64,000 nucleotides of DNA, from the NCBI GenBank assembly GCA_038087875.1, contig JAXLNO010006158.1:1-64000 (forward strand), in the 5' to 3' direction. The notes below the pieces were generated by a model, which was not told where the DNA came from, made no database searches, and was given only the letters and a program-made list of their open reading frames with translations. Positions 1-40,944 of this stretch are shown piece after piece (within the stretch, counting starts at the first letter, position 1; every line of letters begins with the position of its first letter). A program made the translations under genes and the position numbers. This DNA is from Malacoraja senta. Lineage: Eukaryota.

Positions 1-373
1 ATAGAAAGCTGAAAAGGAGATGTGGGGCTGGGACAAAGCCTGGCAAGTAATACAGGTGATAAGACATAAAAAGCTGGAGTAACTCAGTGGGACAGGCAGC
101 ATCTCTGGAGAGAAGGAATGGGTGACTTTTCAGGTCGAGATTCTTCTTAGACTAGTTGGGGATAAGGGAAACAAGAGATATAGAAAATGATGTAGAGAGA
201 TAAAGAACAATGAATGAAAGATATGCAAAAAAGTAACGATGATAAAGGAAACAGGCCATTGTAAGCTATTTGTTGGGTGAAAACGAAAAGCTGGTGCGAC
301 TAGAGAACGGATTTTGATAAATAGACGGGTGGAGTAAGTGGCAACGGCTAGAGGTGAAAAGGTGACAAAGGGT

Positions 374-401
374 CTGAAGAAGGGTCTCGACCCGAAACAT
401 C
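374..401 (+). ncRNA. Minimal hammerhead-like core (representative copy)
   Basis: GGGU-CUGAAGA-A-GGGUCUCGACCC-GAAAC-AUC-ACCC: perfect stem II, 4-bp stem I, AUC triplet. Confidence 0.5.
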
Positions 402-1020
402 ACCCATTCCTTCTCTCCAGAGATGTTGCCTGTTCCGCTGAGTTACTCCAGCTTTTTGTGTCTTATCACCTGTATCACTTGCCAGGCTTTGTCCCAGCTC
501 CACATCTCTTTTTCAGTTTTCTATTACAATCAGTCTGAAGAAGCGTCTGACCCAAACCATTATCTGTCCATTCCAGACTGCAGGAGTACATGCTGAGGGA
601 CTCACTGGAGAGTTTTAACCAGCATCAGCAGTTCCTTCCTGTACATCCTGCCTTGTATAGCATTGTTCTGTGTTTACAAATAGAGTGTAAATAAAACCTG
701 GCATCCTGTGTGCCATTTAAATTAATTATGATTGATGTATATTTTTATTCCATGCAATCCTACAAAGTATCCCACAAATACACCACTCGGCAGCATTCAG
801 TGGATGGTGGCTGAGGCAAGGCAGCTCTTTGAACTAGTTCATGGATCACATGTGTATTCTTTTTACGTTGTCTTTTACAATTTAGTTGACCAATTAGTTT
901 AAATCTTTTTCCCCCAAGTTACTGAACTTTTTCCACAGGAAGTACTTTTTTATGGCCCATTCTAGTGAGAATATTGATGACTGAAAAATAAGAAAACTGT
1001 TCTACTGTACTCACTCTAAA

Positions 1021-1915
1021 CTCATGACTGCGTAGCCAGACATAGTCCGAACTCCATCATCAAGTTCGTCGACGACACCACTGTTGTGGGACGAATCACT
1101 GATGGTGATGAGTCAGAGTATATTAGTGAGATCGGCCAGCACAATAACCCGGCCCTCAACACCAGTAAAACCAAGGAACTGATTGTGGACTTTAGAAGAG
1201 GTAGGATAGGAACCCACAATCCCGTTTATATCCCGGGACGATGGTGGAAAGGGTCAAGAACTTCACATTCTTGGGCGTGCATATTTCAGAAGATCTTTCA
1301 AGGTCCCAGCACACTGATGCAATCATAAAAAAGGCACAGCAGCGCCTCTACTTCCTGAGAAGATTACGGAGAGTTGGTATGTCAAGGAGGTCTCTCTCGG
1401 ACTTCTACACGTGCACAGTAGAGAGCATGCTGACTGGTTGCATCGTGGCTTGGTTCAGCAACTTGATCGTCCAGGAGCGGAAAAGAATGAAGAAAGTTGT
1501 AAACACTGCTCAGTCCATCTTCGGCTCTGACCTCCCTTCCATCGAAGGGATCCATCGCAGTCGCTGCCTCAAAATGGCTGTCAACATCATCAAAGACCCA
1601 CACCATCCTGACCACACACTCATCTCTCCATTGCCATCGGGAAGAAGGCACAGGAGCTTGAAATCTGGAACATCCAGGTTCAAGAACAGCTTCTTCCCCA
1701 CAGCCATCAGGCTATTAAACACGATATCAAACAAACTCTGAACAATAACAGCCTATTGCACTTTATATGTTTATTTATTGTGTATATATATGGTCTATGG
1801 TATATAGACACACTGAACTTTTATCTCTGTATTATGTTTACATATTCTGTTGTGCTGCAGCAAGCAAGAATTCATTGTCCTATCTGGGACACATGACAAT
1901 AAAACTCTCTTGACT
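1021..1915 (+). mobile_element. Rex1/Babar-type (CR1/L2-group) LINE, 3' fragment, frameshifted
   Basis: [23 protein letters not shown] and KKAQQRLYFLRRL motifs; 3' tail with AATAAA and CTTGA remnant. Confidence 0.85.
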
Positions 1916-1933
1916 TTTGGGCAGTACTATTAT

Positions 1934-2243
1934 GGGTGGCACGGTGCAGTAGAGGTAGAGTGACTGCCTCACAGTGCCAGACACCCGGGTTCGATCCTAA
2001 CTATAGGTGCTGTCTGTATGGAGTTTGTACGTTCTCCCTGTGACCTGCATGGGTTTTCTCCAAGACCATCGATTTCCTCCCACGTACAAAGACGTACATG
2101 TTTATAGGTTAATGGGCTTGGTGTAAATATTAAATTGTCCCAAGTTTGTGTGTAGGGCAGCGTTAAGGTGCGGGAGTCGATGGCCAGCGCAGACTCGGTG
2201 GGCCAAAGTGCCTGTTTCTGCTCTATATCTCTAAACTAAACTA
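1934..2243 (+). mobile_element. HE1-type tRNA-derived V-SINE
   Basis: B box GGTTCGATCC, V-domain GGGTTTTCTCC...TTTCCTCCCAC, CR1-like tail ending (CTAAA)n. Confidence 0.85.
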
Positions 2244-2269
2244 TTAACGTGTGTATCAAATCACTGAGG

Positions 2270-2600
2270 AGAATAAAGTCATCGAACACAGAAACTTGCG
2301 TCATAGTTTAAAAATAAGCAGTAGACCATTTAGGAGTGAGATAAGGAAAAACGTTTTCACCCAGAGAGTTGTATATCTGTGGTATTCTCTGCCACAGAAG
2401 GCAGTGGAGGCCAATTCACTGGATGTTTTCAAGATAGAGTTGGATTTAGCTCTTAGGGCTAATGGAATCAAGGGATATGGGTAAAAAGCAGGAACGGGGT
2501 ACTGATTTTGGATGATCAGCTATGATCATATTGAATAGCGGTGCTTGCTCGAAAGGCCGAATGGCCTACTCCTGCACCTACAGTATTTTCTATGTTTCCA
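2270..2600 (+). mobile_element. CR1/HER1 LINE 3' end
   Basis: FTQRVVYLWYSLPQKAVEA motif plus the CR1 3' UTR. Confidence 0.85.
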
Positions 2601-3199
2601 TGTAAATCTCACATTCCAATGAACTTCCCTCTTCTCTCAATTTTCCCACCACCCACATTCACTTGGGGAAAATTACCTTCCAGTCAAATAATCTGATCCT
2701 ACCTCACAAATGTTTATAAACACTTTAAGTGTAACCTTGTTAAATGTCTTCTGAACAGAAGTGATTAATCTTCCCATTTTCTCTACCATCTCAAAAATGT
2801 ACATACTTCAGCCGGCATAACTACACTTTTACACATCCGTACACTTCTCTCTGATAAATTCACAGCAGGTCAAGAGCACAATTGCTCAAGCCCTGAGGAA
2901 TGTATTGCTGGACTCGACTCAATATTAATCAGCAAAAGACCCATGTTCTAGGCTATGATTACATTACAAATCTATCAAACAACCTTTCCATTTTCAGTGG
3001 AAAATAAGGTAAAATAATGACGTGGTGCTATAAACTTGACACAGAAATATAACATGTTGGAAATGATCCAACAGCATCTGTGGAGGTAAATAAAGTTGCA
3101 ACAATTTAGTTGCCAAATTAAATGATGAAGGTCCAGAACGTGAATTCAGATTTCCTCTCCTTAAGCTTGAACTTTTCCTTGCTTTCTGGGAATTTAGTT

Positions 3200-3485
3200 T
3201 AATTTAGAGATACAGTGCAGAAACCTGTCCTTCAGCCCACCGAATCCACGCCGACCAGCGATCCCCGCACACTATCACTATTTTATTCACGCTTGGGACA
3301 ATTTAGAATTTTACTGAGCAAATTGGTATGTCATTGGAGTGTGGGAGGAAACCGGAGCACCCGGAGGAAACCCGTGCCGGTCATGGGAAGTACGTACAAA
3401 CTCCATGCAGACTGAAACCGTAGTCAGGATCAAACCCGGGTCCCTTGCGCTGTAAGGCAGCAGCTCTGCCGCTGCACCACCGTGC
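3200..3485 (-). mobile_element. HE1-type V-SINE
   Basis: Reverse complement of the SINE head, V-domain and tail. Confidence 0.8.
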
Positions 3486-3605
3486 TGAACCATATTTTTT
3501 AGCATTTCCTGCCAAATCCTAAACTGTATCAGAAGATGACTTCTCATGCAATCTTGGTCTTATGTCATTTCAAATATTGTTTTGAAAATATTACTACACA
3601 CTCTA

Positions 3606-4639
3606 GGTATGTTACAAAACTTACCTTCAGCGGCGCTGCAGTTCTGTCACTGCCGGTGTGCGCGACTTTGGCGCCTTTGAGAGGGGGCCGGGTTTTAAAT
3701 GCGATATTTCGGCAGCCTGTTCTAAACGATCTTGAACAGGTTAAATAGTTCATGAAGAAAAATCACTTTGACTGCCGTTTTATTAAGTTTATTAAAATTA
3801 GCGCATTATAATTTAATTGTTGGAGTAAAATTAAAATCATCTTCAAATGCCGTCAACGCCGACAACGGGGACGGATTTCACGCACGGGACAAGGCAAGGT
3901 ACACTGTTTATTTTTTCATATAAACTTGCTTCTTAGGATGCCTTTAATAAAAATTTCAAGTTGCGAAAATGTGATTATTTAAATATACCAACCGGCAGTA
4001 TTTGTCCTGCCGATATTGGGGTTTAATTCAGTGCAAACGTAGCGTTCCAAACCAGCGCGTTCCACAAAATCCCACTCGCAAGATGATTTAAATGGCCATT
4101 AGTTTACAGGAATTAAACACTAAATTCCTTCCATTTGGCCTATAAATTAATGACTGAGATTAAAAAATAATGTTATATTGTGAATTCTTGTGTGAATGTT
4201 ATTTGGACACTTAGGCTTTTTAAAAATGTTAACTTTTTTTTAAGAAATGGATAGATATTTAGATCTAGTAATTGAATTTTGTAATTAGCTACAATTGGGT
4301 TACTAACTAATTATATGCTTTAATTTCAGGTCATCCAAGTAAGATTGTTTCATATTTGTTTCAGAATGCTTCAATCTATAATAACTGAAAATTTCATTAA
4401 GTTCTCTTAATTTTTAAGAAAGTTATGGGCTTTTGACTGTCCTTGATCACAGCTTTTGTGTTAATGGAAAAGCAATAGGGAACAAGAAGCTAATTTCCGA
4501 GTATGAAAATGGCCATAACTTTTTTAATACTGAAGATATGAAAGTGAATTAGGTGTCAAATTAAACTTCTTTTTATGCTTTATCTGATGGGATAAATTGC
4601 AGACTTGATTTTTAAAATCTCAAAATTTTGTAACATTGC
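3606..4639. mobile_element. Non-autonomous TIR DNA element, unclassified
   Basis: GGTATGTTACAAAA / TTTTGTAACATTGC inverted ends (12 of 14 match), flanked by TA on both sides. AT-rich, no transposase. Confidence 0.55.
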
Positions 4640-4831
4640 TACATACTCCAGCAAATGGTTTATGAATAATAGAAGAAACTTACTGTACCAGTTAAAAATC
4701 ATTGTGAAAAATGTAATTCCCTCCAAATTTCATTCCCTTCTGTTTTGCAGCAAGAATGTCATTGTCCTATCTGGGACATATGACAATAAAACCAGCGCGT
4801 TCCACAAAATCCCACTCGCAAGATGATTTAA

Positions 4832-5575
4832 CTGGAGTCAAGTTGGGAAAAGGGGAAGTACAACGGGATCTGGGGGTCCTTGTACATCAGTCTATGAAAG
4901 TAAGCATGCAGGTACAGCAGGCAGTGAAGAGAGCGAATGGCATGTTGGCCTTTATAACAAGAGGAATCAAATATAGGAGCAAAGAGGTCCTTCTGCAGTT
5001 GTAGAGAGCCCTAGTGAGACCACACCTGGAATATTGTGTGCAGTTTTGGTCCCCTAATTTGAGGAAGGACATTCTTGCTATTGAGGGAGTGCAGCATAGG
5101 TTTAGAAAGTTAATTCCCGGGATGGCGGGACTGTCATATGCTGAGAGAATGGAGCAGCTGGGCTTGTACACTCTGGAGTTTAGAAGGATGAATGGAAATC
5201 TCATTGAAACATATAAGATTGTTAAGGGCTTGGACATGCTAGAGGCAGGAAACATGTTCCTGATGTTGGGGGAGTCAAGAACCAGGGGCCAAAGTTTAAG
5301 AATAAGGAGTAAGCCATTTAGAACGGAGACGAGGAAACACTTTTTCTCACAGAGAGTGGTGAGTCTTTGGAATTCTCTGCCCCAGAGGGCTGTGGAGGCA
5401 GGTTCTCTGGATGCTTTCAAGAGAGAGCTAGATAGGGCTCTTAAAAACAGCAGAGTCAGGCGATATGGGGAGAAGGCAGAAACGGGGTACTGATTGGGGA
5501 CGATCAACCATGATCACATAGAATGGCGGTGCTGGCTCGAAGGGCCAAATGGCCTACTCCTGCACCTATTGTCTA
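4832..5575 (+). mobile_element. CR1/HER1 LINE, 5'-truncated
   Basis: RPHLEYCVQFWSP...FFSQRVVSLWNSLP motifs plus the complete 3' UTR. Confidence 0.92.
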
Positions 5576-6139
5576 TAACACTCTTGTCTCTTGAAGATGT
5601 GAGGAAGGGTCTCAACCTGAAATGTCACCTATTTCTTTTTGCCAGAAATGCTGCATGACCCACTGAGTTACTCCAGCATTTTGTGTCTATCTTCAGTGTA
5701 AACCAGCATCTGCAGTTTCTTCTTGCAAAGATGTTCCTCTACCACCTGAGTTCCTACAGTAGTTGTTTTTATGATACTAGGTTGACATGCAATTGAGACA
5801 TGCTGTGAGCTTTCCTTCAAAGCAGGAGGACAATTAAGCCCATATGCTCAATCCATGCACATTTTAACCAATGACGTATTGTAAAGCCTTAACAGTACAA
5901 TTTACATTCAGCTTTCAGATAATGCATTCGACCACAAACAGATGTCCATCTCATTAAATTCTACCAGATAAGGCTTGTAAAGTCTGAAAAGGGGTCTCGA
6001 CCCGAAACATCACCTATTCCTTTTCTCCAGAGATGCTGCCTGTCCCGCTGAGTTACTCCAGCTTTCTGTGTCTATCATTGAAAGACATTCTCCCTCCCCC
6101 ACACTTCCTGCAGCTTAATATGCTTCTTTTTTTCTCCTA

Positions 6140-6900
6140 GAAAAAGACACAAACTCGATGGTCAGGCAGTATCACTGGAAAACATGGATATGTGGTGTTG
6201 TGGAACAGGATCCTTCTTCAGACTAATTGTGGGAGGTTGGGGGGGGATGATATGGGCATTGTAGAGGGGGAGTGGGAGGGGGAGATGAAGGAAACTGGAT
6301 GAAAGGCGGGGCAGGTAATATGTGAACATAGGTGAGGAGGCTGTAATGGGGGGGGGGTTTGATGGGGAGATTATTGGACAAGGGCCAGAGATAAAAATAC
6401 AGGTGTGCAACAAAATAATTGAAAAGTTGCAAATGGCAAATTTAGAAGGAAGGGGGAGTGGAGGGAAATAGGTGCAAGTCCAGGTGGGCTACAGGGGAGC
6501 GGGTCAACGGTGGGGAGAAATATGGGTGTGGGTGAGAAAGGGGAGGAAGAGAAGGAGGAGAGTAGGGCTTAGCTTTCCTAAAATTGGCGAGTTCAATGTT
6601 CACACCACCAGGTTGAAAGCTACCCAAGAAGAATATTAGGGGCTGTTTGCATGTGACCTCACACTGGCAATGGAGGAGACCCAAGACAGAAAGGTCAATA
6701 TGGCAATGGGAAAGGAAGTTCAAGTGGTTAGCAACCAGGAGATCCAGAAGTCCATGGCAGATCCAGTGCATATTTTCGGCGAAATGGTCGTGGAGTCAAT
6801 GCTTGTTCTCGTCGATATACAGGAGGCCACATTGGGAACACCGGATGCAATAGATCAGTTTAGAGAAGGTGTACATGAACATCTTGTCTCACCTAGAAGG
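6140..6900 (-). mobile_element. Penelope-like element, degenerate GIY-YIG/3' region
   Basis: DLSVLGLL...IFFLGSFQPGGVNIE matches the copy at 17450-18360. Confidence 0.7.
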
Positions 6901-7789
6901 GCTGCTATGGTCCCTCGAGGCAGACCACAGAGGAGGTACAGGATCAGATGTTACATCCGCAGTTGCAGGGGAGATTACCTGGGATGCAATGGTTTGTGTG
7001 GGAAGTGATGAGAATTTTAGGTAACCTACCCCCCCCCCCCATTTCTTGCCCTCCCCTGTGCCCCATCTGGACTTGCATCCATTTCTGCCCTCCCCCGTCC
7101 CCTTCATCCATTCCTCTATTTTCACAATTCACCATTCTTTAATTCCTTTTGTCTTTTCATCTCTGGCCTTTGTTGTCGGAAAATCCTCTATGCAACATTT
7201 TAGTTTAGTTTATTGTTACGTGTACAGAGGTACAGTGAAAAGCTTTTGTTGCCTGCTAACCAGTCAGCGTAAAGACAATACATGATTACAAACTAACCAT
7301 TTACAGTGTAGAGATACATGATGAGGGAATAACATTTAGTGCAAGGTAAAGCCAGTAAAGTCCGATCAAAGAAAGTCCGAGGGTCACAAATGAGGCAGAA
7401 GTAGTTCAGGACTGCTCTCTCATTTTGGTATCTATCACCTATCATCTGCCAAACTTTGTTCTGCCCCTTCTCTCTTCCAGCTCCCACAATCAGTTTGAAG
7501 AATGGTCCTGACCCAAAACCTTAGCATCCCACGTTCTCCAGTAATGCTGCCCGTCCCACTGAGTTATTCCAACACTGTGTCTTTTTATGTTAACCAGCAT
7601 CTTCAGTTCCTCCTTTCTTCTTTCTCCTCCTTCCCAGTCCTGAAGGGTCTCTGGCCTGAAACATTAGCTCTGCTTTCCTGCCTACAGATGAGGCCTGACC
7701 TACTGCATATTGCCAGTGTATTCGGTATTTTACTAAAGTCAATTTTAATAATACTATTCCTTCATGCATTAATGAATTACTATCCTTTT

Positions 7790-9240
7790 CTGGAGGAGGT
7801 ATTCACGAGAATCTTCAATCTGTCTCTATCTCTGGCAACGGTCCACAAGTGCCTGAAAACAGCCACCATAGTGCCGGTGCCGAAAAAGTCCAAAGTCACC
7901 AACCTGAACGACTACCGCCCGGTTGCTCTAACTCCAATCCCAATGAAGTGCTTCGAAAGGCTGGTCCTCTCCCATATCAAATCCAGCATCCCTGCCTCAC
8001 TGGACTCCCATCAATTTGCATACAGGGCAAATAGATCAACAGAGGATGCCATCTCTCTGGCTCTTCACACTGTCCTGACTCACCTGGACAGACAGGGCAC
8101 GTATGTGAGGATGCTCTTCATTGACTATAGCTCTGCATTCAATACGGTCATCCCCACCAAGCTCACCACCAAACTCCACCAGCTAGGCCTCAGCTCGCCG
8201 ATATGCGATTGGATCCTGAACTTTATGACGGAGCGACCGCAGGCAGTGAGACTGGGCCCGCACCTCTCCTCCACTATCACCCTGAGCACCGGCACACCAC
8301 AGGGCTGTGTATTAAGCCCCATGCTCTACTCCCTCTTCACTCACGACTGTGTCCCTGCATTCGACACCAACACCATCGTGAAGTTTGCAGATGACACAAC
8401 AGTGATTGGGCTGATCACCAACGGTGATGAAACAAAATACAGAGCGGAGGTGCCGAACCAGGCGGACTGGTGCGCTCATAACAACTTGTCACTAAACACC
8501 TCCAAGACCAAGGAGATTATTATTGACTTCAGGAGGTCCCATAATGGAGAATATGCCCCAATCTCCATTTACGGGGAAAGTGTGGAGAGAATGTCCAGCT
8601 TTAAGTTTCTGGGCACTCACATTTCAGAGGTCCTCACATGGTCCACCAACACCGCTGCACTGGTCAAGAAGGCACAGCAACGACTGTTCTTCTTGAGGAC
8701 ATTAAAAAAGACTGGTCTGCCCCAACAGCTGCTGACAGCGTTCTACCGCTGCACCACAGAGAGCATATTAACGTATGGCATCTCTGTGCGGTATCTCAGC
8801 TGCACGGAGGCGGAGAGGAGAACTCTTCAGCGCGTCGTCCACACAGCGCAGAGGATCATTGGGACAGAGCTACCAGCCTTGGAGGGCATCTGCCACACAC
8901 GGTGCCTCAGGAAGGCCGTCAGCATCCATAAGGACTCATCACACCCTTGTAACGGACTGTTTGAACTACTTCCCTCCGGCAGACGTTATAAGGCCTTCTA
9001 CGCCCGAAACTCCAGACTCAGAAACAGCTTTATTCCAAGAGCTATAGTAGCTCTGAACCAGCCCTGCTGAGTGCCCCCCCCCCCACCCACCCCCCCCTGG
9101 ACAGTCTCCCTCGGATGGTCACGTCACTCAGCTTGTTTATTTATTTATTTTACTTTTCTTGTACATCGGTGGAGCTGCATACTAAATCTCGTTGCACTGA
9201 CGTGCAATGACAATAAAAGATATTATTATTATTATTATTC
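7790..9240 (+). mobile_element. Rex1/Babar-type LINE, 5'-truncated, open RT frame to 9070
   Basis: [27 protein letters not shown] and KFADD motifs; AATAAA + (TAT)n tail. Confidence 0.92.
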
Positions 9241-9514
9241 AACTATGTTCAAGGTATGAACATTTCAGCATGCAATTCAACAGTAAAAATATCATAAAAA
9301 TACCAAACAACAGTGTTATTCAAACAAGTAGTTAATATCGAGACATGTTGGAATCTTGAGCAATGAAATACTGGAGGAACTCAGTGAGTCAGGCAGCATC
9401 TGTGGCTGGAATGGACAGGTAACGTTTTGAGTCAGGACCCGTCTTCAGTAGTTTAAATAGTTTTGAATCTAGCTACTTGCAATAAATCAGTAATTTTAGT
9501 GGTTTTTAAGGTTA

Positions 9515-9822
9515 GTTTAGAGTTACAGCATGGAAACAGGCCCTTCGGCCCACTGAGTCCATGTTGACCATTGATCTCCCATTCACTCTAGTTATTCCAC
9601 TTTCTCGTCCACTCTTTACACACTAGGGGCAATTTACATAGGCCAATTAACCTACAAACCTGCATGCCTTTGGGTTGTGGGAGGAAACCGGAGCACCTGG
9701 AGGAAACCCACTCGGTCACAGTGAAAATGTGCAAACTCCACATAGACAGACCTGAAGTCAGGATTGAACCTGGGTCTCTGGCGCTATGAGGCAGCAACTC
9801 TCTACCATTGCACCACTGTGCT
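9515..9822 (-). mobile_element. HE1-type V-SINE
   Basis: Reverse-complement SINE head, V-domain and tail. Confidence 0.8.
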
Positions 9823-12800
9823 GTACTTCACAAAACCCATTAGCCAGATCAACACACGTAAATGGCAAAGAAAATCAAAGGAGCATTGGCGGCCATGGGT
9901 GCCTGTGTTATATGGAAAATAAATTGTGAGGAATAGGACTGATGAATGAAAGAATGATTGAATGATACTCTATTGTCACATGTACCCAGGGTACCTGGGT
10001 ATAGTGAAATGCTTTGTTTTCCATACAACCTCGGTCTATCCTTGAGCGGACTTTGCTGGCTTCACCTTGCATTAAACATTATTCCTTTATTATGTGTCTC
10101 TACATTGTAAATGCATTGATTGTAATCATGTATTGTCTTTCTACTGACTGGTTAGTAAGCAACAAAAAGCTTTTCACTGTACCTCGGTACACGTGACAAT
10201 AAACTAAACTGAACCTAGGCTGTACAAAAATGTCGTCATGTGTTGGCGCAGACAAAGTTACAAATTACCGAACAGTCCTATCCACTGCCTGTTGCCACAC
10301 ATGGCAGCAGACCCCATCCCCACCAGTTCCCCCTTCATTCTTGGTGGCGCCCCCATCACCACAGTACCCCATTTGTTCTCATCCCCCTCAATGGGAGAGC
10401 CTCCCTCTGCTGAATGCCCTACGTCTACAATGTTCTAAGTATAAGATTAGATTAAGCAATGCTCACTGTTGGACGTTGTACCTGCAAACCTTTATTACTT
10501 TGTTGGTCTCTTTGAATACAAAAATTCTTGGGTGTTCTTCTCTGTACAAACTAAAATGTGTTGGTTTCTCTGTAACCTTTGAATTCTGGTATCATGCTCA
10601 CCAATCTTTTTTAACAGATGCAGCATGGAAACATGCCTTTCTGCCCACTGAGTCTGCACTGACCATCAATCACCCATACACTAGTTCTATGTTTTCCCTG
10701 TTTCACATCCAACACACTCAGGGCAATTTACAGCGGCAAATAAACCTACAAACACACATGTTTTTGGAACATGGGAGGAAACAATAGACAATTGGTGCAA
10801 GAGTAGGCCATTTGGCCCTTCGAGCCAGCACGGCCATTCAATGTGATCATGGCTGATCATCTCCAATCAGTACCCCGTTCCTGCCTTTTCCCCATATCCC
10901 CTGACTCCACTATCTTTAAGAGCCCCATCCAGCTCTTTCTTGAAAGTATCCAGAGAACCAGCCTCCACCGCCCTCTGAGCACCCAGAGGAAACCCGAGCG
11001 GTCACAGGGAGAACGTATCAACTCCATACAAACAGAACCCATTGTTGGGATCCTTCTTGTGTCTGTGTAGGAAGGCACTGCAGATGCTGGCTTACACCAA
11101 AGATAGAGACAAAATACTGGAGTAACGCAGTGGAACAAGCAGCATCTATGGATAAAAGGAATGAACCTTCTAGTATCCCACTCGTTATATATTAATTTAT
11201 TGTAATTGGAGCAGTCTGCAAAACTCTTCATAGACGAGACAAGTGTTTATGTGGATTGGCTACCATTAAACTCTAGTCCCCTGCAATAAAATGCAGATTC
11301 AGCATTTTACAGATCAATATTTTGAGGGCCCCGTTTACAATGATATGTGCATCCCATCATTTAGAATGCCCCTTCACCTACTCTTTTGAAGCATTCTCCA
11401 CACATATAGTCACAGAGACACACAAACAGAACCTTCAGCCGACAGTCCACTCTGACCATGAAGCACTCATTCCATACCATTCCATCCCACCATTGATCTA
11501 CAGGAGGTGCTGCCTCAGAAAGACAGCTAATATCATCAGAGACCCACACCACCCTGGCCATACTCTCAGGGCCGGCCACCCTGGACCAGGAATTCGCCCG
11601 GAAGATCTGGCCCATCCATCATGGACCGAGTTCTTGCTCGCTGTGGACCAAGGATGGAGGATCCACCTGGAAGGCCCAGCTCGCCCGCCCAGAGTGGAAG
11701 GAGTCAGATGGATGGCTTATAGGCAGACAGGCTGCGGGAGGGAATGGACTGCCTCAACAGTGGAGTGGGCGCTGGAGACCTTACAGCAGCCTGGGGCTTG
11801 GCTGTTCCAGGTGCTGCTCCAAGAGGCCGGGCACATGGACCAGTTGCGCCCTGCAGCAGTAGAGGACACCACAGCTTCGCTTGGACAGGTCAACCCTGCA
11901 ACAACACCAGGACAATGGGCCTCATGGTCAGGCCAAGAACCCTCACTTACAACAACTGGGATGTGAAAATGGCACCAAAAACTGGCGACACTGTATACTG
12001 TCTCAGCGTACTACTGCTATACACTTGTACTGTATCTGAGATGCTTATCTAAGATGTATCTAAGGACTTATGTATAGTGATACATGTACTAAACTGTATA
12101 CAATAATGAATTTCACTGTACCTCAGTACATGCCACAAATAAAATACCGTTGAACCAATCAACTGCCTCTGAGGTTAGAGAGCCTGAGAACTGTTAGCTC
12201 CAGGTTTAAGAGCAGCTTTTTTTCTCATGAGCAGCAGGCATTTAAACACTGCACAACACTAACCACAACCTTACCCCAACAACTCTGATCTGCAATAACT
12301 TTATTTTGATTGCAGTAAGGATGTTTTGTTTTTCCACTGTTATGGTCTGGTTACCTAGTATAACTAATATTAATTTATTTTACCATTGATTGTTGTATAT
12401 TTAATATGTATATAAGAATTTCATTGTTCCATTGCCAGTACAGATGACAATTAAACTCTTGCTCTTGACCAACCCATTCTTATTCTCTGCAAATTCCCAT
12501 CATCTCTCTCCAGATTCTATCACTTACCTACAAATGACAGTCAATTTACATTGTAGAAACAAGGAACTACAAATGTTGGTTCACGAAGAGACACAAAGTG
12601 CTGGAGCACCTTAGTGGGTCCGGCAGCATCCCTGGAGATCACGGATATGTGATGATGGATAGATGTTTTGGGTCAAAACCCCTTCTTCACTCTGTGGAAG
12701 GGTGTTTACCCTAAACGTCATCTAGCCACGTTCTCCGGAGATGCTGCCTGACCAGCTGAGTTACTCCAGCACATAGCGATAGACACAAAATGCTGGAATA

Positions 12801-13732
12801 ACTCAGTGGGACAGGCAGAATCTCCAGAGAGAAGGAATGGGTGATGTTTCAGATTGAGGCCCTTCTTCAGACTTTGTCATCATTGGGCTAACTTGCTCCA
12901 TCCCATTCACCCATCATCTTTCTGATTGAAAAATATTCAGATTTTAAACTCTGATCATTGTATTTAAATATGTAAGACCAACAGCTCTTTCATTCAAAGC
13001 AAATCTTTCAATCATTTGTTCTTATATCTCTCTATATCACCGCCTGTATCTCTCATTTCCCTTTCCCCTGACTATCAGTCTGAAGAATGGTCTCGACCTG
13101 AAACGCTACCTATTCCTTTTCTCCAGAGTCGCTGTCGGACCCGCTGAGTTACTCCAGCATTGTGTGTCTATCTTCGGTTTAAACCAGCATCTGCAGTTCC
13201 TTCCTACGCAGCTCCTCCCTCGGCATGCATACAGTCCATACAATTTCACAGTTGAGGTTAGCGTTGTGTATTGTTCACGTGCGTGATAGTTGTTGGGAAG
13301 AAGCTATTCTTGAACCTGGAGGTCATGGTTTTCAAACACCTATACTTTCTTCCCCATGGTGGGAGGTAATGAAAGCGTGGCCAGGGGGATGATGTTGCCT
13401 TCTTTTTTGAGGCAGCGCCTCGTGTGGATCCCTTCGATGGTGGTGAGGTCAGAACCCACGATGAACCGGGCAGTATAACTTCCTGATTATTCACAAATTT
13501 AAGTATTTCATCTGAAGAGCAGGCCTAAGTCATAGAATTGCTCTCTAACTATCCCTACCTCTTATTCTTCCTTTAAGATGCACCTTAAATGTTTATTTTG
13601 CTAATTGTCATGTCATGCCATTATACTGCTCGAAGTAAAATGTTACAGAATAATATTCTTACGAATCTCATTGAAGCATTTTCCTACACTGGAACTGCTA
13701 TAAATGTTATTCTTTATATCTAAGCCTGTTTC

Positions 13733-15040
13733 CCCTTTTCAATTTGCATGGACCCTTTTCAATTTGCATACAGCGCCAATCGGTCTGTGGAGGATGCTAT
13801 CAACCTAGCTCTTCACTACTCCCTACATCATTTGGAATCACCGAACACTTATGCACGCATCCTGTTTATAGATTTTAGCTCGGCCTTTAATACTATACAC
13901 CCAATTAAACTCTACAATAAACTGTTGGACATGGGCATTCACCTAGCCATGTGCCATTGGATTTTACATTTTCTGACAAACAGACAACAAAGAGTCAAGG
14001 TGGGTGAAAAACTCTCCAGCCCTCTGACTCTCAATACAGGAGCCCCTCAAGGGTGCGTTCTGTCACCTCAGCTCTTCTCACTTTACACCAACTACCTCAC
14101 ATCCCAATGCAGCTCAGTTAAAATTTTCAAATATGCAGACGACACGACAATAATTGGCCTCATCTCAGACAACAATGAATCACAATACCATCAAACAGTG
14201 GACAGCGCAGTCAAATGGTGCGCAGACAACAACCTCCAGCTTAACACCTCAAAAACCTTAGAAACCATCATAGATTTCAGATGCAAACAAAACCTCAAAC
14301 CCCTGGTTCATGTCAACTCCCATCCCATAACCTCCACGAACTTATTTAAGTTTCTGGGCACCTATATCTGCAATAATCTAAAATGGCACATCAATGCTGA
14401 CCAAATCATTAAGAAAGGACAACAACGCCTATACTTCCTCAGACAGCTCAAGAAGTTCAGAGTCCACAAACACCTCCTGGTCCGTTTCTATCAATCCATC
14501 ATTGAAAGCATCATCACCTCCTCAATCACAGTCTGGTACGGAAACACTGACAGTCACTCACTACATAGAATACAGCGCATTGTCTCCAAGGCCTCTAGGA
14601 TCATCAACTCTCCCCTCCCCTCAATCTATACCATTTACCTCCAACGTAGCTCAAAACGGGCAACAAAGATCATCTCGGACCCCTCCCATCCAGCAAACCA
14701 CCTTTTCCAGTCTCTCCCTTCAGGGAGGCGCCTTAGGTCACTTGCTACAAAATCCACCTGTTTTAAAAACAGTTTCTTCCCCTCAGCAATAAGAACACTT
14801 AATTCCCTCCAATAACTTTTTGACTTTGATGTATACAGTGTCTTGTCTATGGTTTTTGTCTGTTCTTTTGCACTATGTATTGTTGGTGAGATTTGTGATT
14901 TGTGATGTGCTTTATTATTATGATCTGTGTTGTTATTAGTGTTAATGTGCTAAAGCAGTGTACCATCATGTACCGAACCCAATTACCACCAACCCTGGTC
15001 GTGTGGCAAATAAAGTTTCTATTCTATTCTATTCTATTCA
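13733..15040 (+). mobile_element. Rex1/Babar-type LINE (AT-richer subfamily), open RT frame 13748-14815
   Basis: [18 protein letters not shown] and KYADD motifs; tail AATAAA + (TTCTA)n. Confidence 0.92.
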
Positions 15041-16089
15041 CCAAATTAGATTATTACCATCAAAGGAGAATGTCATTGTTTTGTTTGGCTCTGGAGATGC
15101 GTGCTGGAATGTGATCATTAAAATCTTCTTTTATATTGAACCCTGAACGACACTATACTCAGCTATGATTAATGAACAAAATAAAGACAAAGTGTTGGAG
15201 TAACTCAGCAGATCAGGCAGCATCGCTGGTGAGAATGGATAGGTAATGTGTCGAGTCGGACCCTGTGGACCTATGGACTGTCTTTGGTTAAACTAAGCAT
15301 TTGCGGTGTTTGTGCACATGTATTGGGATTATCAATTAACTGGATTTTTAGTATGTTATCTATTTGTATTGTCTTACAGGTCTGCTACATGAATGTCATT
15401 GTTTTGTAGTCAGCACATATGACAATTGAACATTCTATACTCTCTTTCCTTCTGGACTCTCTTGTGGAGTGGGATCAAACCTAACATAAGCAAAATGTTG
15501 CCATTCATCCTTTGTTCCCAATCTCTGATATTCTATAAGATCATAACCGATCCTCTAGCAGACCACCATTTTTCCGAATTCCGGATTCCTTTTGTATCCA
15601 AGCATATTCCTATCCCTGCCTCAAGCATCTGATTGACTGAATGCCCACAGCCTTCTTGGACAGAGAATTTGAAAGACTAATTAAAACTAATTTCATCTCA
15701 TTACTGCACTGAATTCAATGATTCAATGATATTTTATTGTCACATGCACCTAGGTACAGTGAAATGCTTCGTTCCGTATACAACTCGGTAAAATCATATA
15801 GCAGACCTAACCTAGGCAATACACAAGTGTTACCATGTTTTGGTGCCATAAGAATGTCTGAACCCTTATTTTTAAACTGTGAATTGTGGTTCCAGACACA
15901 CCAGTCTGGGGAGAAATAAAAAGATCATCCCTCATGTTCTGAACTTTGACTCACTTCATAAGTCAAAGGTGCAGAATTTGGTTGTTCAGCCCATCGAGTT
16001 TACTCCACAATTTAATCATGGCTGACCTATCGTTACCTCTCAGTGCCGTTCCCCTGTCATCTCCCTGTGACCTTTGACACTCTTACAAA

Positions 16090-17300
16090 TCGGGCGGCAT
16101 TTTCTGTTTTTGTATTCCAGTCCTCTTGATATAAATCACCTTCCTGACTACCGATTCAATTTGCAAATTAACCTTTTGAGAGTCCTGCACCACCACTCCC
16201 GTCACTGTGTGCCTCCGATTTCTGAATTCTCTCTCCATTTGTAAAATAATCTACGCCTTTATTCTTATTACCAAAATGCATGTCTCCACACTTTGCTATA
16301 CTGGATTTCATCTGCCAATTCTCTGCCCACTCTCCTAACCTGTACACGTTCACGTTACAGGAGTAGAATTAGGCCATTCGGCCCATCGAGTCTACTCCAC
16401 CATTCCATTATGGCTGATCTGTGCCTCCTAATCCCATTTTCCTGCCTTCTCTCCATGATAACCCGTTCTAATCAAAAATTTGTCGATGTCTGCCTTAAAA
16501 ATATCCACCAACTTGGCCTTCACAGCCCTCTGTGGCAATGTGTTCCACAGATTAACTACCCTCTGACTAAAGAAATTCCTCCTCACCTCCTTTCTAAAAG
16601 AGCACCCTTTAATTCTGAGGCTATGACCTCTGGTCCTAGATTCACCAACCAGTGGAAACATCCTTTCCACATCCACTCTATCTTTGCCTTTCATTATTCT
16701 GTCAGTTTCAATGAGGTTCCCCCCTCAACCTTCTTACCTCCAGCGAGTAGAGGCACAGTCCTGTCAAACTATCATCATATGCTAACCCACTCATTCATGG
16801 AATTATTCTTGTAAACCTCCTCTGAACCAGAGCCAGCACATCCTTCCTCAGATAGGGGGCCCAAATTTGTACACTGTACTCCAAACGTGGCCTGACCAGC
16901 GCTTTTGAAGCCTCAGAATGACATTTCTGTTTTTGTAATCCAGTGCTCTTGATATAAATCACCTTCCTGACTACCGATTCAATTTGCAAATTAACCTTTT
17001 TGGGAGTCCTGCACCAACACTCCCATGTCACTGTGTGCCTCCGATTTCTGGATTCTCCCTCCATTTGTAAAATAATCTACGCCTTTATTCTTATTACCAA
17101 ATGCATGTCTCCCACACTTTGCTATACTGAATTTCATCTGCCACTTCTCTGCCCACTCTCCTAACCCGAACAAGTCCTTCTGCAAAGTCCTTGCATCCTC
17201 TACACTGCCTGCCCCTCCACCTATTTTAGCATCATCTGCAAACGTGGCCACAAAACATTCAATCCCCTTATCCAAATCATTAATAAACCATGTAAACGTG
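16090..17300 (-). mobile_element. CR1 LINE with a locally duplicated internal segment
   Basis: FADDAKIGG, RPRLEYSVQIW and FFSQRVVNLWN motifs. 16090-16345 repeats 16920-17190. Confidence 0.85.
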
Positions 17301-17449
17301 ACGACCGCACGTTTGGAGCTAAGAGTTGTCACTCAGTCAATAACAAATCCACAGTGTGTGCTAATCTTTTATTGATTTTGCATTGTACTAGTGCCTCACT
17401 CTCTTCCCACATTTGGCCATAAACATGAACCTGTCAAACAATGCACTTT

Positions 17450-18360
17450 GTGTAAGAAAGAACTGCAGATGCTGGTTTAACTCAAAGGTAGACACAAAAT
17501 GCTGGAGTAACTCAGCAGGCAGGCAGCATCTCTGGAGAGAAGGAATGGGCGACCTATCGGGTCGAGACCCTTCTTCAGACTGATGTCAGGGGAGTTGACG
17601 GGACAAAGATGGAATGTAGTTGAAGACATTAAGACTGGTGGGAGAACTGGGAAGGGGGAGGGGATAGAGATGGAACGCAAGGGCTATTTAAAGTTAGAGA
17701 AGTCAATGTTCATACCGCTGGGGTGTAAACTACCCAAGCAAAATATGAGGTGCTGTTCCTCCAATTTGCACTGGGCCTCACTCTGACCATGGAGGAGGCC
17801 CAGGACAGAAAGGTCAGATTGGAAATGGGAGGGGAAGTTGATGTGCTGAGCAACCAGGAGATCAGGTAGGTTAAGATGGACAGAACGGAGTAGTTCAATG
17901 AAATGATTGCCGAACCTGTGTTTGGCCTCACTGATGTAGATACGTTGACACCTGCAACTGCGGATGCAGTAGATGAGGTTGGAGGAGGTGCAAATGAACC
18001 TCTGCCTCACCTGGAAAGACTGTTTGGGTCCTTGGATGGAGTTGAGGGGAGAGGGAAAGGGACAGGTGTTGCATCTCCTGCTGTTGCAGGGGAAAGTACC
18101 TGGGGAGGGGGTGGTTTGGGTGGAAAAGGACGAGTTGACCAGGGAATTTCGGAGGGAACCGTCTCCACGGAAAGCAGAAAGAGGTGGAGATGGGAAGATG
18201 TGGCCAGTATTGGGATCCTGTTGGAGGTGGCAAAAATGATGGAGGATCATATGCTGTGCGACGGCTGATGGGGTGGAAGGTGAGGACAAGGGGGACTCTG
18301 TCCTTGTTATGAATGTGGGGGGAAGGGAGAGCAAGAGCGGAGCAGCGAGGAAACCCTAGT
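17450..18360 (-). mobile_element. Penelope-like retroelement, GIY-YIG endonuclease region and 3' repeat
   Basis: FPCNSRRCNTC linker, NLIYCI...YISE (GIY-YIG-like), HFIE, EEQHLIFCLGSLHPSGMN; followed by the hammerhead-bearing terminal repeat. Confidence 0.85.
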
Positions 18361-18648
18361 GCATGCCTCGCTCCTGTTTGTTTTACACGAGTTAAAATCA
18401 GTTTAAAGCAATATCTGTAGTTCTTTCTTCCACAGAGGAAACGGGGCATTGTGCAAATCAATGCAGAAATTCCAGTCTGGATTGTACTGAAACAGGGGAG
18501 ATTAAACCCTTTTAACGTCCGTATGAACCATGAACCAGACTGAATGTGTATTGCGCGCTTTTTTAAACTCAGTCACTTCCGGTCAAGATTGAGTTAAAGC
18601 CAAGACGCTTTTAGCCAGTAGCGAATAAAATGAGAATCATTAACTTAC

Positions 18649-18700
18649 CTGCTTGAGCCCCTTGTACGCGGAAGAAACTCAACAAGATGAACAGCATCAT
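18649..18700 (-). CDS. Orphan signal-peptide exon (MMLFILLSFFRVQGAQA) of a second, probably MHC-family, gene
   Basis: ATG ATG start, 52 bp, ends GCA G|gtaagt (phase 1), A-X-A cleavage motif, unique CpG-containing context. No downstream exons found in the window. Confidence 0.6.
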
Positions 18701-18774
18701 TTCACGCACAACCTCTCGCATCAACAGCAGCAACTGAGCCAAACTTCACCAACATCAAAGCAGGATCTCATCAT

Positions 18775-18817
18775 GCAATCAGAATCAAAATACCACGGGT
18801 CGTCACCAGTTGTCGAG
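18775..18817 (-). promoter_or_regulatory. Candidate X/X2-Y module upstream of the second leader exon
   Basis: Minus strand reads CTCGACAACTGGTGACG, then CTGATTGC, with ATTGC 22 bp after the TGAC. An Ets-type CCGGAAGT lies at 18575-18582 in the intron. Confidence 0.5.
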
Positions 18818-20988
18818 CGATGTCATTGAACCAGCAGGAAACAATTGACTGTAATGGAGACACGAGGAGGTGCTGATGCTGATTTACAACAACAAAAGAC
18901 ACAAAGTGTTGGTGTAACTCAGCAGGTCAGGTCGCAACTCCGGAGGGCATAGATAGGTGACGATAGACACAAAGCGCTGGAGTAACTCAACGGGTCGAGC
19001 AGCATCTTTGGAGAAAAAGGATAGGTGACTATTGTCAGTCTGAAGTAGGGTCCCAATCTGAAACAGCGCCTGTCAATGTCCTCCAGAGATGTTGCCCGAC
19101 CTGCTGAGTTACTCCAGCACTTTGGTTTTTTCGCACTCTATAGCAAATGGAATGGAAAGGCAGGGCGTAGTTGCCTGGAACTGTAATTACGTTTCAGATA
19201 ACGCTCCATTCTTATGCTGCTAACTGCTCCTTATGTTATGATTCAGGAGACCCATAAATCCAATGCCTATCCTGACTTGAATCATTACAATGCAGAACAC
19301 AAAGGAGGAAACCAAACACTGTCCACAACAGGTAGAGCTGCTGCCTCACAGCACCAGAGACCAGCGTTAGATCCTGACCTCTGGTATTGTGCGTGTAGAT
19401 TTTCTTTAAGAAAGAACTGCAGATGCTGGAAAAATCGAAGGTAGACAAAAATGCTGGAGAAACTCAGCGAGTGAGGCAGCATCTATGGAGCAAAGGAATA
19501 GGCGACGTTTCCGGTTGAGACCCTCCAAGAAGGGTCTTGACCCAAAACTATTCCTTCGCTCCATAGATGCTGCCTCACCCCCTGAGTTTCTCCAGCATTT
19601 TTGTCTAGCTACTGTATAGATTGTGTTCCTTCTTCCTGTGACCACCTGGGTTCTTCCCGGGTGCTCTGGTTTTCTCCCACATTCCACAGGTGTGTGGGTT
19701 TGTCAGTTAATTGACATCTGTAAATTTCCCCTAGTGTGTGGGGATTGGACAAAAAAGTGGGATAACATTGAACTAGTGTGAAGGGGTGACCGGTGGTCAG
19801 CATGGTGGGCTGAAGGGCCTGTTTCCATGTTGTATCTTTCAACTCAAAATGGAATTCTGTAAAACAGTTATATTGGAAGCTAGTTTGGAGATTGAAACTG
19901 TGCAGCAAATGGTGGTGGATATAGACGGCGATGGTGTCTACAAATTTATCAAGGATCTATCTATCAGATATGGGGAGAACTTACACAATAGCATTGGTAT
20001 TGGTTTATTATTGTCACTTGTATTGTGATATAGTGAAAAGCTTTTATTTGCATCATAATCAAACCAGATCAGGAATGACTGAGGGATTGTATTGAACAAC
20101 AGGGCAGGCTTGTGGGCCTGTTTCAATGCAATAAACTCCATATTAATGTACCATATAAAGAATGCAGGTGCTTGTATGGTTGGTGATGAGCCCAAAATAT
20201 TGCTTTTGTAATTCAAGATATCCTCAGTGTTGCAACGGTAGAGTTGCTGCCTATAGCAGCAGAGACTCAGGTCGATTCTGACTAACGGTGCTGTCTGTAC
20301 GGTGTTTGTACATTCTCCCTGCATCTCCATGCGTGACTGCATTGTTTTTCTCTGGGTGCTCCAGTTTCCTCCCACATCTCAAAGAAGTACAGGCTTTTAG
20401 GTTAATTTGCGTTGGTAAAATTGTAAATTGTCACCTGTCGTGGTATAGTACTATTGTACGGGGAGTTAGCGAGGACTCGGTGGGCCGAAGGGCCTGCTTC
20501 CGTGATGTACCTCTGAAGTCTAATGTCAAAATGTTAATTTCTATTCATTTTAATTTTCAGCTCTTAACCAAAATCATTTCAATCAACCCAAAGATGTCTG
20601 TGTTTCTCCCTCACTACACCAGATTTAAGTCTGCATTTTAAAAAATGCTTTTAATTTTGCTCGGATAGTGCTGAACTAATTTGCTTATGTTACTGGAGTT
20701 ATAACTCACAGCAGTGACCACAGTAAGCAAGAGACATCAAATACATGAACACAAGAAAGGAGAAGCAGGAATAGGCCCACAAGCCACTGGCAGAATTAGT
20801 CCAAACCAATGTTTTAGTCCATGTTACTCAACCACTGATAGAGGCCACATTATTCTGCTCCCTTCTCCCTAAAGTTGAGTTTAGTTTATTATTGTAATGT
20901 GTACAAAAATACAGTGAAATACCATGTTTTGCATGCTATCCAGTCATAATACACCATACATGACTACAATCATAAACAAGAGTGCAAT

Positions 20989-24871: not shown

Positions 24872-25900
24872 TAGGTCCTTGGATGGAGTCAAGGGGGGAG
24901 GTAAAGCGACAAGTGTAGCATTTCCTGCGGTTGCAAGGGAAAGTACCAGGGGAGGGGGTGGTTTGGGTGGGAAGGGACAAATTGACCAGGGAGTTACAGA
25001 GGGAGCAGTCTCTGCAGAAAGCTGAAAGATGAGAAGATGTGGCCAGTGATGGGATCCCGTTGGAGGTGGCGAATATGTTGGAGGATTATCTGTTGTATGT
25101 GACGGCTGGTAGGGTGGAATGTGAGGACAAGGGGGACTTGTCACTAGTGGGGGGATGGGGAGTGAGAGCGGAGCAACGAGATATAGAAGAGACCCTGGTG
25201 AGAGCCTCATCTATAGTCGAAGAGAAGAAGCCCCATTCCCTAACCTTCCCCTCCCCTGGCACTTTCCCTTGCAACCGCAGGAAATGCTACACTTGTCGCT
25301 TTATCTCCCCCCTTGACTCCATCCAAGGGCCTAAGCAGTCTTTCCAAGTGAGGCAGAGGTTCACCTGCCCCTCCTCCAACCTCATCTATTGCATCTGCTG
25401 CTCTAGGTGTCAACTGCTCTACATCGGTGAGACCAAGCTCAGGCTTGGCGATCGCTTCGCCCAACACCTCCGCTCAGTCCGCATTAACCAACCTGATCTC
25501 CCGGTGGCTCAGCACTTCAACTCCCCCTCCCATTCAGAATCCGACCTTTCTGTCCTGGGTCTCCTCCACGCCAGAGTAAGACCCTCCGCAATTGGAGGAG
25601 CAGCATATCATTTTTCGCTTGGGTAGTTTACACCCCAGCGGTATGAACATTGACCTCCATTTTCAGGTAGTCTTTGCTTTCTCCCTCCTTCCCCTCCCCT
25701 TCGAAGCTCTCCCACAGCCTACTATCTCCACCTCTTCCTTTCTTCTTCCCGCCCCCCCACCCCCATATCAGTCTGAAGAAGGGTCTCGACCCAAAACGTC
25801 ACCTATTCCTTTGCTCCATAGATGCTGCCTCACCGCTGAGTTTCTCCAGCATTTTTGTCTACCTTGGATTTTTCCAGCATCTGCAGTTCTTTCTTAAACA
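24872..25900 (+). mobile_element. Penelope-like element with inverted 5' segment
   Basis: 24872-25240 is antisense PLE. From 25244 the sense strand reads CNRRKCYTC...NLIYCI...YIGETKLRLGDRFAQH, then the 3' repeat with a hammerhead-like core at 25773-25800. Confidence 0.85.
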
Positions 25901-27905: not shown

Positions 27906-28777
27906 TAATGTGATTGATACTTGTTGAGAGCAGAGCTGAAAATAGGTGAGGTGCCCTTGGAAAACAGTGTGGACACAGGATGTCTGGGGATGGCCATTTT
28001 ATAAAGGGAGTACACTATGAAGGAAAATAGATCAATGTTAAGAGTTCTCAAGCCAGATAAGCAAAACTAAGATGTGTTTTGTTATTCAGCCCCTGGAATG
28101 AGTGGCAACTTGAATTTCTTGATTTTCTTTTCAGAGTTCAGACCTTGGATTAGAGTCTATTGTGCAACATATCAGCTGAGCCCCTGGACAGATTAATGGT
28201 TGCCTGTTCAACATTCTGTACAACTGTAACACGACACCCCAACCCTAGTCCTCAGTACCATGGCTGAGGAAACAAGGCATAACATATACTCTGTGTAGGG
28301 ATGAACAGCAGATGCTAATTTAAACCGAAGATAGACACAAAAAGCTAGAGAGACTCAGCGGCAATATTTTTGGAGAGAAGGAATGGGTGACGTTTTGGGT
28401 CGAGGCGATTCTTCAGACATATATTCCCTTCACTACCCTATCAAACTATGATGCCATTTTCAGGGAACTATGTAATTGTACACCAAGGTACAGCTCCATT
28501 TACAATCCTGCAATAGATTTGGCCAGCCCTGATTTGACTTCCCAAAAGGCATCAAATCACACTTGTTTGAGTTAGATTTCAACTGGCATTCCTTCCCCAC
28601 ACCCCCTCACCTCCCATCCCCTCACCTCCATACCTTTCCGGTTGATCAACATTATTTTGTAATCTTAGACAACAATTATCATTACCTAATATACTTATCA
28701 ATTTTGGTGTCAACTCTGGCAAAGAATCCAAAGATACTTTATGTACATTCAAGAGTCAATATTGTTTTATTGTCATA

Positions 28778-37844: not shown

Positions 37845-38315
37845 ACAGTACAGCACAAGAACAGGCCCTTTGACCCACAATGTTTGTGCCGAACATGATG
37901 CCAAGACCAATTGTTATCTGCTTGCACATAATCCATATCCATCCATACCCTGCATATACATGTGCCTATCTAAAAGTCTCTTAAATGCCACTATCATATC
38001 TGCTTCCCCCACCACCCCCGGCAACACATTCCAGTCACTCACCACCCTTGGCGTAAAACACTTGTCCTGCACATCTTTTTTAAACTTTGCCACTCATTGT
38101 AAAGCTATACCTGCTCTTGTTTGATATTTCCTTCCTGGGTAAAAAGTCTGATGGTCTACCCTATCTCTACTCCTCCCAGTTTGATATATTACTGTCAGGT
38201 CTCCCACCAATCCCCGACATTCCAGAGAAAACAATCCAAGTCTGTCCAACTTCTCCCTGTGGCTAATACCCCACTAATCCAGGCATCATTCCGGTAGACC
38301 TCCTCTGCATCCCAA
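37845..38315 (-). mobile_element. Old 5'-truncated CR1 overlapping the end of the class I CDS
   Basis: Minus strand TGCAGAGGAGGTCTACCGGAATGATGCCTGG corresponds to the CR1 QRRFTRMMPG segment and continues to the CR1 3' tail. Confidence 0.8.
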
Positions 38316-38506
38316 CGGAAGCTGGTTGTGCTTCATGGTCCTCTCCTGGTCTCTGCTGTTGCCAGCTGGTCCCTGTTCATTGAAAGGTTTTATCTTTTTC
38401 TTCTTCTTCCAGCAACCAATTCCAAGGATGATCACCAGGAGAATGAGAGGAACGATTACAGCTCCAGTCACGATCCTAATCTTTATATCTTCTTTCGCTG
38501 CCATCT
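38286..38506 (-). CDS. MHC class I-like gene, exon 5 (connecting peptide, transmembrane, cytoplasmic tail, stop)
   Basis: caacag| phase-1 acceptor. (E)MAAKEDIKIRIVTGAVIVPLILLVIILGIGCWKKKKKIKPF...GLPE*: a hydrophobic helix followed by a poly-Lys stop-transfer. The five exons total 1083 bp = 360 aa + stop with no internal stop. Confidence 0.85.
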
Positions 38507-38756
38507 CTGTTGGCATATATAGTTCATTTTAAACATTTATTGATCAATTACGACTTTGAAATGATTTTATTATCTACATTAAACTAGCATTGTTCACATC
38601 TAAATAAAAAGTAACAAAGTCTTAGATTTATGTAATTGTCCAGACGATGGATGTTTAAATAGATCAATGAAAAATCTTTGAAGTTCATATTAGCGTTGAG
38701 ATTTTATCTGCAGCATTTAATTATGAATTTAAAGAATCAAGCATATGTCAGAAATA

Positions 38757-39590
38757 AAGATTCAAGATACAAGATATTTTATTAGTCACATTCACATACA
38801 CCCAGGTGTAGTGAAGTGAAATGCTTTTTGCCATTATGCAGCACACAAAAAAGAGAGAGAATACAGACACAACACCAAGATAGTCTTAACACTGAACATC
38901 CCCCCACAATGGGTCCCACCATGAGGGAAGGCACAAAGTCCAGTCCCCAACCCCAGTTCACCCATAGTCGGGCCCATTTAGGCCTCCACAGTTGCCTCTA
39001 CGGAGGCCCGATGTTCCAGGCCGTTCTCGCCGGGTGATGTTGCTCCAGCGTCGGGAGAGTCCTCCCAGCGGCCTGGGAACCCTGGAACGGCCGCTTCCGC
39101 ACTGGGGGCCGCGGCTTCTGAAGCCAACAAGGCCGAGCCGGTTGGAGCTCCACAACTGGCGCTCTCATCTAGAGATCCCAGGCTCCCGGTGTAAAGTTCA
39201 GCGCCGCCGCCCGCGGCTGGTCGCTCCACAGTCCCGCAGCTCCGCGATGTTTTCTCCAGCGATCCTCAGCTCACCGGAGCTCCAGCGCGGCGACCCGGGC
39301 AAGGCACCGCCCGCTCCGCGATAGCGCTCCAGCGCTGTGCCGAAGCCGAGGCTCTGGGCGGTCCCCGACAGGAAACGCCGCTCCAGGCCCGCTGGTAGGC
39401 CGCGAGGACGGGTCGAAGCTGCAGCCCGGAGAAAAGCTGCCTCTCCGGCCAGGTAGGGACCCTGAAAGGTAGTTTCCCCCCCACACAAAAAAGTCTAGAC
39501 CTCCAAAACAAAACACTTTACTGACTAAAATAAAAAATAAAGGTGAAAGGACAGACAGCTGCTGGCTGGGCAGCCGCACACAGGTCAGCG
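38757..39590 (-). mobile_element. CpG-rich non-autonomous element with a Rex1/L2-type 3' tail (intron 4)
   Basis: GC-rich body; 3' end CATTTCAC...GTGACTAATAAA + (TCTTGA)n on the minus strand. Confidence 0.6.
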
Positions 39591-39603
39591 CCCCCTGGTG
39601 GTC
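39586..39603 (-). promoter_or_regulatory. CTCF-like core motif
   Basis: GACCACCAGGGGGCGCTG on the minus strand, essentially the CTCF consensus. Confidence 0.6.
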
Positions 39604-40920: not shown

Positions 40921-40944
40921 CATTTGGCTCTGCTTTGCCCACTC

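Follow-up and report, generated by a model that had tools for sequence, protein, structure and literature searches.

A short coding exon lies on the minus strand at 18649-18700 of the window (the whole stretch of DNA analysed, 64,000 nucleotides in length). The initial annotation had described it as an orphan signal-peptide exon of MHC type, and such an exon is indeed present: it begins with an ATG at 18700, is 52 bp long, ends in phase 1 and is followed by a perfect splice donor. The features of the locus, in the order in which they are read on the minus strand, are as follows.

18440-18850 (no strand): unique CpG-retaining stretch of 411 bp between repeats, covering the putative promoter, exon 1 and the start of intron 1
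18825-18829 (minus): TCAAT; in the alignment this is CCAAT, invariant in Amblyraja radiata, Leucoraja erinacea and Rhinoraja longicauda
18776-18805 (minus): motif pair TGACGA-N17-CTGATTG, preceded by GACAACTGG at 18814-18806
18701-18798 (minus): 5'UTR part of predicted exon 1, minimum extent of 98 nt, from alignment to the RNA-seq contig L008
18649-18700 (minus): coding part of predicted exon 1, 52 bp, phase 1; signal peptide MMLFILLSFFRVQGAQA plus the first base of a Gly codon
18643-18648 (minus): splice donor GTAAGT after CAG, the full consensus CAG/GTAAGT
1-18642 (minus): window part of predicted intron 1, in collinear blocks to position 1 and full of retroelement fragments

On the minus strand the exon reads ATG ATG CTG TTC ... 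GCA G/GTAAGT, with the first ATG at 18700-18698 and the second adjoining it. A third in-frame ATG is located upstream at 18721 (18721-18719) and would prepend MREVVRE to the leader; it is not kept in R. longicauda, where it is replaced and followed by an in-frame TAA. The donor GTAAGT is invariant in four skates and in sawfish, and is GTGAGT in zebra shark. Both strands of the window were scanned for exons of this form (an ATG, a phase-1 open exon of 40-79 nt, a GTRAGT donor, a hydrophobic core and small residues at positions -3 and -1), and the sole locus returned is 18700-18649. Second-order Markov simulations give 0.07 expected matches per simulated window, although this figure is supporting evidence only, as the criteria were chosen post hoc after the exon had been seen. 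The surrounding stretch 18440-18850 has no second copy within the window and has a CpG observed/expected ratio of 0.82, compared to 0.34-0.40 in the flanks, so the earlier description of a unique CpG-containing island holds. The adjoining 18850-19100 belongs to a dispersed repeat family of ~68 bp; a 35-bp self-match of the exon to this nearby family (E-value: 5.5) was taken as chance. Duplication of the leader of the neighbouring gene (49190-49241) was also considered as an origin for the exon and rejected, with 6/17 residues and ~40% of bases in common and no match at the DNA level.

The identity of the leader was examined by searching 1.84 billion representative proteins with the alpha2 exon of the neighbouring gene and aligning the 17-residue leader to all 150 matches. 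The best leader match among these 150 is P0045 (score 65; every other match scores 30 or less), an L. erinacea "class I histocompatibility antigen, F10 alpha chain-like" protein whose N-terminus is MREVVREMILFILLSFFHVQGALAG followed by PHTLIYYY. The window leader reads MREVVREMMLFILLSFFRVQGAQAG against the L. erinacea MREVVREMILFILLSFFHVQGALAG; M, R and Q in the window take the place of I, H and L, respectively, and upstream TCAAT that of CCAAT. Identity is 14/17 residues with both L. erinacea and A. radiata, or 21/24 when the upstream MREVVRE is counted. Among homologues of P0045 and members of its cluster, the A. radiata leader is MREAVREMILFILLSFFHVQGALAG, that of R. longicauda is MVLFLLLSFFRVQ(G/E)ALAG and those of Pristis are MFMFILLVFFRVQVALAE and MFLFMLLSFLRVQGALPD. 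The leaders of sawfish, ray and shark proteins are looser versions, and a motif, L-L-S-F-F/Y-R/H-V-Q, is common to most lineage members from skates, sawfish and sharks. None of the clusters searched contains a protein with exactly the window leader.

The L. erinacea protein P0170 matches PDB 9ch4_A over residues 27-292 with an E-value of 1.3e-114 (next best structure: 3.5e-48). PDB 9CH4 chain A ("Ig-like domain-containing protein") is the mature ectodomain only, and the leader is not in the structure. The elasmobranch class I lineage with this solved structure is presumably the one named UGA, and that label is used here. One publication, with a personal communication as the source, presents UFA and UGA as CD1-like lineages of sharks and rays that are linked to the MHC and have single or low copy numbers, and describes them as CD1-like lipid binders (PMC12562908). 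A second publication mentions only UFA, as unpublished (PMC10751288), and literature searches returned no primary paper on 9CH4 or on UGA/UFA.

Exon form, leader homology and orthologous position (discussed below) all point to 18649-18700 as exon 1 of a member of the 9CH4-type (UGA) lineage. On this assignment it is an ordinary exon 1, and the skate non-classical MHC class I lineage to which it belongs is known and annotated already. Its L. erinacea counterpart is XP_055486429.1 (JAMYXN010000384.1; also LOC129716032 isoforms such as XP_055521885.1), which has the same exon length, phase and donor, with flanks 88-91% identical. In A. radiata XP_032898133.1 and R. longicauda XP_078272153.1, the first exon and the promoter block are orthologous to those of the window and intron 1 is very long. 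The R. longicauda protein is one of at least 10 near-identical copies, and copy number differs between the species.

The orthologous loci of these three skates were fetched and their exons were mapped by tblastn, with the following positions within each locus.

R. longicauda (L001): leader at 10001, alpha1 exon at 25013, intron 1 of 15.0 kb
L. erinacea (L002): leader at 10001, alpha1 exon at 28185, intron 1 of 18.1 kb
A. radiata (L003): leader at 10001, alpha1 exon at 41880, intron 1 of 31.8 kb

Each of these loci is collinear with the window minus strand in a single chain that extends from 28073 to 1, with the leaders at the same place. Identity to the window along the chain is ~84-87% for R. 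longicauda, 88-91% for L. erinacea and 89-93% for A. radiata; L. erinacea and A. radiata are ~95% identical to one another at this locus. The window sequence is accordingly that of a skate other than these two, or else of an older, diverged copy. Position 1 of the window corresponds to position 22659 of L002, 5.5 kb short of alpha1 at 28185, and to position 33493 of L003, 8.4 kb short of alpha1 at 41880. The exon looks orphaned because the left edge of the window falls inside intron 1. The alpha1 exon is predicted 5-8 kb beyond the left edge of the window, for an intron of ~24-27 kb in the window genome. The statement in the initial annotation that 1-18600 contains no alpha1, alpha2 or Ig exon is borne out: tblastn with the exons of the neighbouring gene finds no alpha1-, alpha2- or alpha3-like exon in 1-18648 and no paralogue of the neighbour's alpha1, alpha2 and alpha3 exons elsewhere in the whole window, and the minus-strand open segments of at least 40 aa in 1-18648 include no MHC or Ig exon, only repeat-like sequence. 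For annotation, a 52-bp exon that is invisible to ORF tracks would thus mark the true 5' end of a UGA-type gene whose first intron crosses the window border. The case also calls for caution, as in this repeat-rich genome an "orphan" leader or a "leaderless" class I gene is often an artefact, produced by a window border or a very long intron.

Two LINE-type reverse transcriptase ORFs (RVT_1) are located antisense inside the predicted intron, at 7502-9070 (+; E-value: 1e-30) and 13748-14815 (+; E-value: 4e-25), and each is followed by an ALKBH8_N-type motif. Three further repeat-derived ORFs, at 17684-18461 (-), 25039-25626 (+) and 6442-6771 (-), are related to one another through common motifs (...LSVLGLLH...SLHPSGMNI..F). 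The first of these lies directly downstream of exon 1, within intron 1. No Pfam match was obtained for 17687-18334; the three ORFs may represent the GIY-YIG end of Penelope-like elements. At the opposite side of the window, a tandem array of a 25-bp repeat at 62444-63991 (~63 copies, 85% match, consensus CAAAAGGTGGTTTGCTTTGAAAATG) reaches the right edge and yields long spurious minus-strand ORFs.

Transcript data are available for the orthologue. Three 334-aa cluster members derive from Logan assemblies, on contigs of 1.4-3.5 kb that must be cDNA because they are far too short to hold the gene. The RNA-seq contig L008 (Logan, SRR11241640, 3455 nt) aligns to the L. erinacea locus L002 as exon 1 at 9921-10074, alpha1 at 28184-28446, alpha2 at 54477-54750 and alpha3 at 64490-64758. 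Its junction, GCAG/GGCC, uses the same donor in phase 1 to join leader to alpha1 across 18.1 kb, and so proves the splicing of exon 1 to alpha1 for the L. erinacea orthologue. Positions 1-154 of this contig are 99.4% identical to L002 9921-10074 and 91.6% identical to window 18798-18648.

The window also carries a UGA-sister gene at 38286-49241 (-), the L. erinacea orthologue of which is XP_055486430.1. This protein and the UGA-type XP_055486429.1 have consecutive accession numbers and are encoded on one 127-kb L. erinacea contig. In Pristis pectinata (CM019888.1), the UGA-sister gene is found at 13,956,125-13,977,896 and the UGA-type gene at 14,020,337-14,056,835, both on the plus strand (these are record coordinates, between which an intervening gene is possible). 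The two lineages are found on one contig in six species. In batoids, UGA-sister and UGA-type genes are therefore arranged as a conserved head-to-tail pair. No UGA-type leader is present within 10 kb downstream of the UGA-sister gene in either Pristis or Heptranchias.

The proposed model for the locus is as follows. A UGA-type gene would lie in tandem with the UGA-sister gene, on the same strand and ~19.6 kb downstream of it. Transcription would start at or upstream of ~18798, and exon 1 would be spliced at CAG/GTAAGT, in phase 1, over a repeat-filled intron to an alpha1 exon beyond the left edge of the window. The exon is thus very probably exon 1 (5'UTR and signal peptide) of a skate 9CH4-type non-classical MHC class I gene whose intron 1 crosses the window edge. 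The first of two options in the initial annotation, a tandem MHC-family gene that begins at this exon and has an intron 1 of more than 18 kb, is supported by leader homology, collinearity, the spliced orthologue and the tandem order. We further infer that the downstream exons are present and intact and that the window copy is expressed.

The exon could instead be a relic, the other option in the initial annotation: a UGA-type copy would have kept its promoter, its first exon and some of intron 1 after its downstream exons had been deleted or disabled, such that no protein is made. In favour of this alternative, the downstream exons are not visible in the window and the lineage is multi-copy in skates (10 near-identical members in R. 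longicauda and two contigs in L. erinacea). Changes private to the window copy include CCAAT to TCAAT and two amino-acid replacements in its leader. Against this, the window is collinear with intact orthologous introns up to its very edge, with no breakpoint, and the ATG, reading frame and donor of the 52-bp exon are all intact. CpG retention (0.82) argues for a promoter that is still unmethylated. By parsimony among four skates, the private changes of the window copy affect 3/147 promoter/UTR columns and 3/52 coding bases, the latter being two replacements (I to M and L to Q) and a synonymous change. This count fits the longer branch of the window copy, and the visible part shows no apparent decay. 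A relic is therefore considered unlikely.

A chance ORF, or the first exon of an unrelated gene for a non-MHC secreted protein, has a negligible probability. A hydrophobic ORF of 17 residues followed by GT can arise by chance, and phase-1 leader exons are common to all immunoglobulin-superfamily genes, but only 0.07 matches are expected per window and 14/17 residues are held in common with an MHC class I leader (21/24 with MREVVRE). The orthologous position and the spliced transcript joining the orthologous exon to alpha1 effectively refute this explanation.

The sequence upstream of the exon had been annotated as an X-Y-like module, and this claim stands in part. The two motifs are indeed present and their pairing is conserved in batoids, but no skate has a CCAAT/ATTGG core at the Y-like site, and the Y-like half lies inside the 5'UTR of the orthologue. 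TGACGA-N17-CTGATTG matches the window once (0.04 expected, for a pattern chosen post hoc). The same pair is found at the orthologous place in L. erinacea (L002), A. radiata (L003) and the sawfish locus L006, while R. longicauda has CTGATCG in place of CTGATTG. A block of ~100 nt around the pair aligns between window and sawfish with a score of 50, compared to a shuffle null of 17.4 +/- 2.3. Compared with the zebra shark locus L007, the window promoter shows no significant similarity (score 19; null 17.6 +/- 2.1), and conservation is for this reason claimed within batoids only.

In the SXY layout of HLA-DRA, an X1 box (bound by RFX) and an X2 box (bound by CREB) are separated by a spacer from a Y box bound by NF-Y, which needs an ATTGG core. 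The batoid block is HLA-DRA-like in that CAAC-N-G-R-TG abuts a TGACG half-site and is followed by a T-rich spacer of ~17 nt and CTGATTG (CTGATTGG in sawfish). At the X1-like position, the window has GACAAC, which agrees at only 5/6 bases with the RFX half-site RGYAAC. An X2 box (CRE-like TGACG) is present as GGTGACGA, invariant in four skates and sawfish, with GTTACGA in the shark. A Y box with an inverted CCAAT core (ATTGG) is absent from the window and from every skate compared: the Y-like element is CTGATTGC in the window, CTGATTGT in A. radiata and L. erinacea and CTGATCGC in R. longicauda, and only Pristis has a perfect CTGATTGG at this site. In the assembled L. erinacea mRNA (contig L008), the 5' end immediately follows TGACGA, so that the Y-like element is transcribed in at least this contig, although such an end is that of a contig and not a mapped start site. 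Unlike the mammalian SXY module, the skate block has no CCAAT/ATTGG core and no identified S box, and its Y-like element is found in the assembled 5'UTR. A classical SXY module is thus not supported, and the region is rated, on sequence comparison, as a conserved promoter/5'UTR block to which no factor specificity is assigned.

It is conceivable, though doubtful, that the ~100-nt batoid block descends from the ancestral MHC X-Y enhanceosome site, is still functional and now drives a CD1-like non-classical lineage. Under such a scheme, skates would have shifted the NF-Y contact away from the degenerate Y box and onto a new CCAAT further upstream, which the window copy would since have lost. If this were true, the locus would provide a natural series for the turnover of MHC promoter logic across more than 200 million years. 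The block conserved between skates and sawfish is in any case a defined target for regulation tests of CD1-like genes. In the promoter of the neighbouring gene (49242-49400, minus strand), a TGAC...N...CCCATTGG arrangement with a CCAAT further down can be discerned by eye.

Several further observations concern the UGA-type lineage in other species. The R. longicauda cluster of P0151 contains at least 10 UGA-type proteins of at least 90% identity, all encoded on chromosome CM130181.1, such that the lineage is expanded in this skate compared to the "single- or low-copy" description of PMC12562908. In several L. erinacea RefSeq isoforms (P0152, P0166, P0167 and P0169 of LOC129716032, and P0165), a leader and alpha1 of UGA type are fused with a GPR139-like 7TM receptor. 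These isoforms combine the Pfam domains PF00001 and PF00129 and are probably read-through or merged gene models on a 249.7-kb L. erinacea contig. In Stegostoma tigrinum (L007), the gene model begins 17 kb upstream of the coding leader at 19006 (2001-19005), which suggests either a non-coding 5' exon or an over-extended model.
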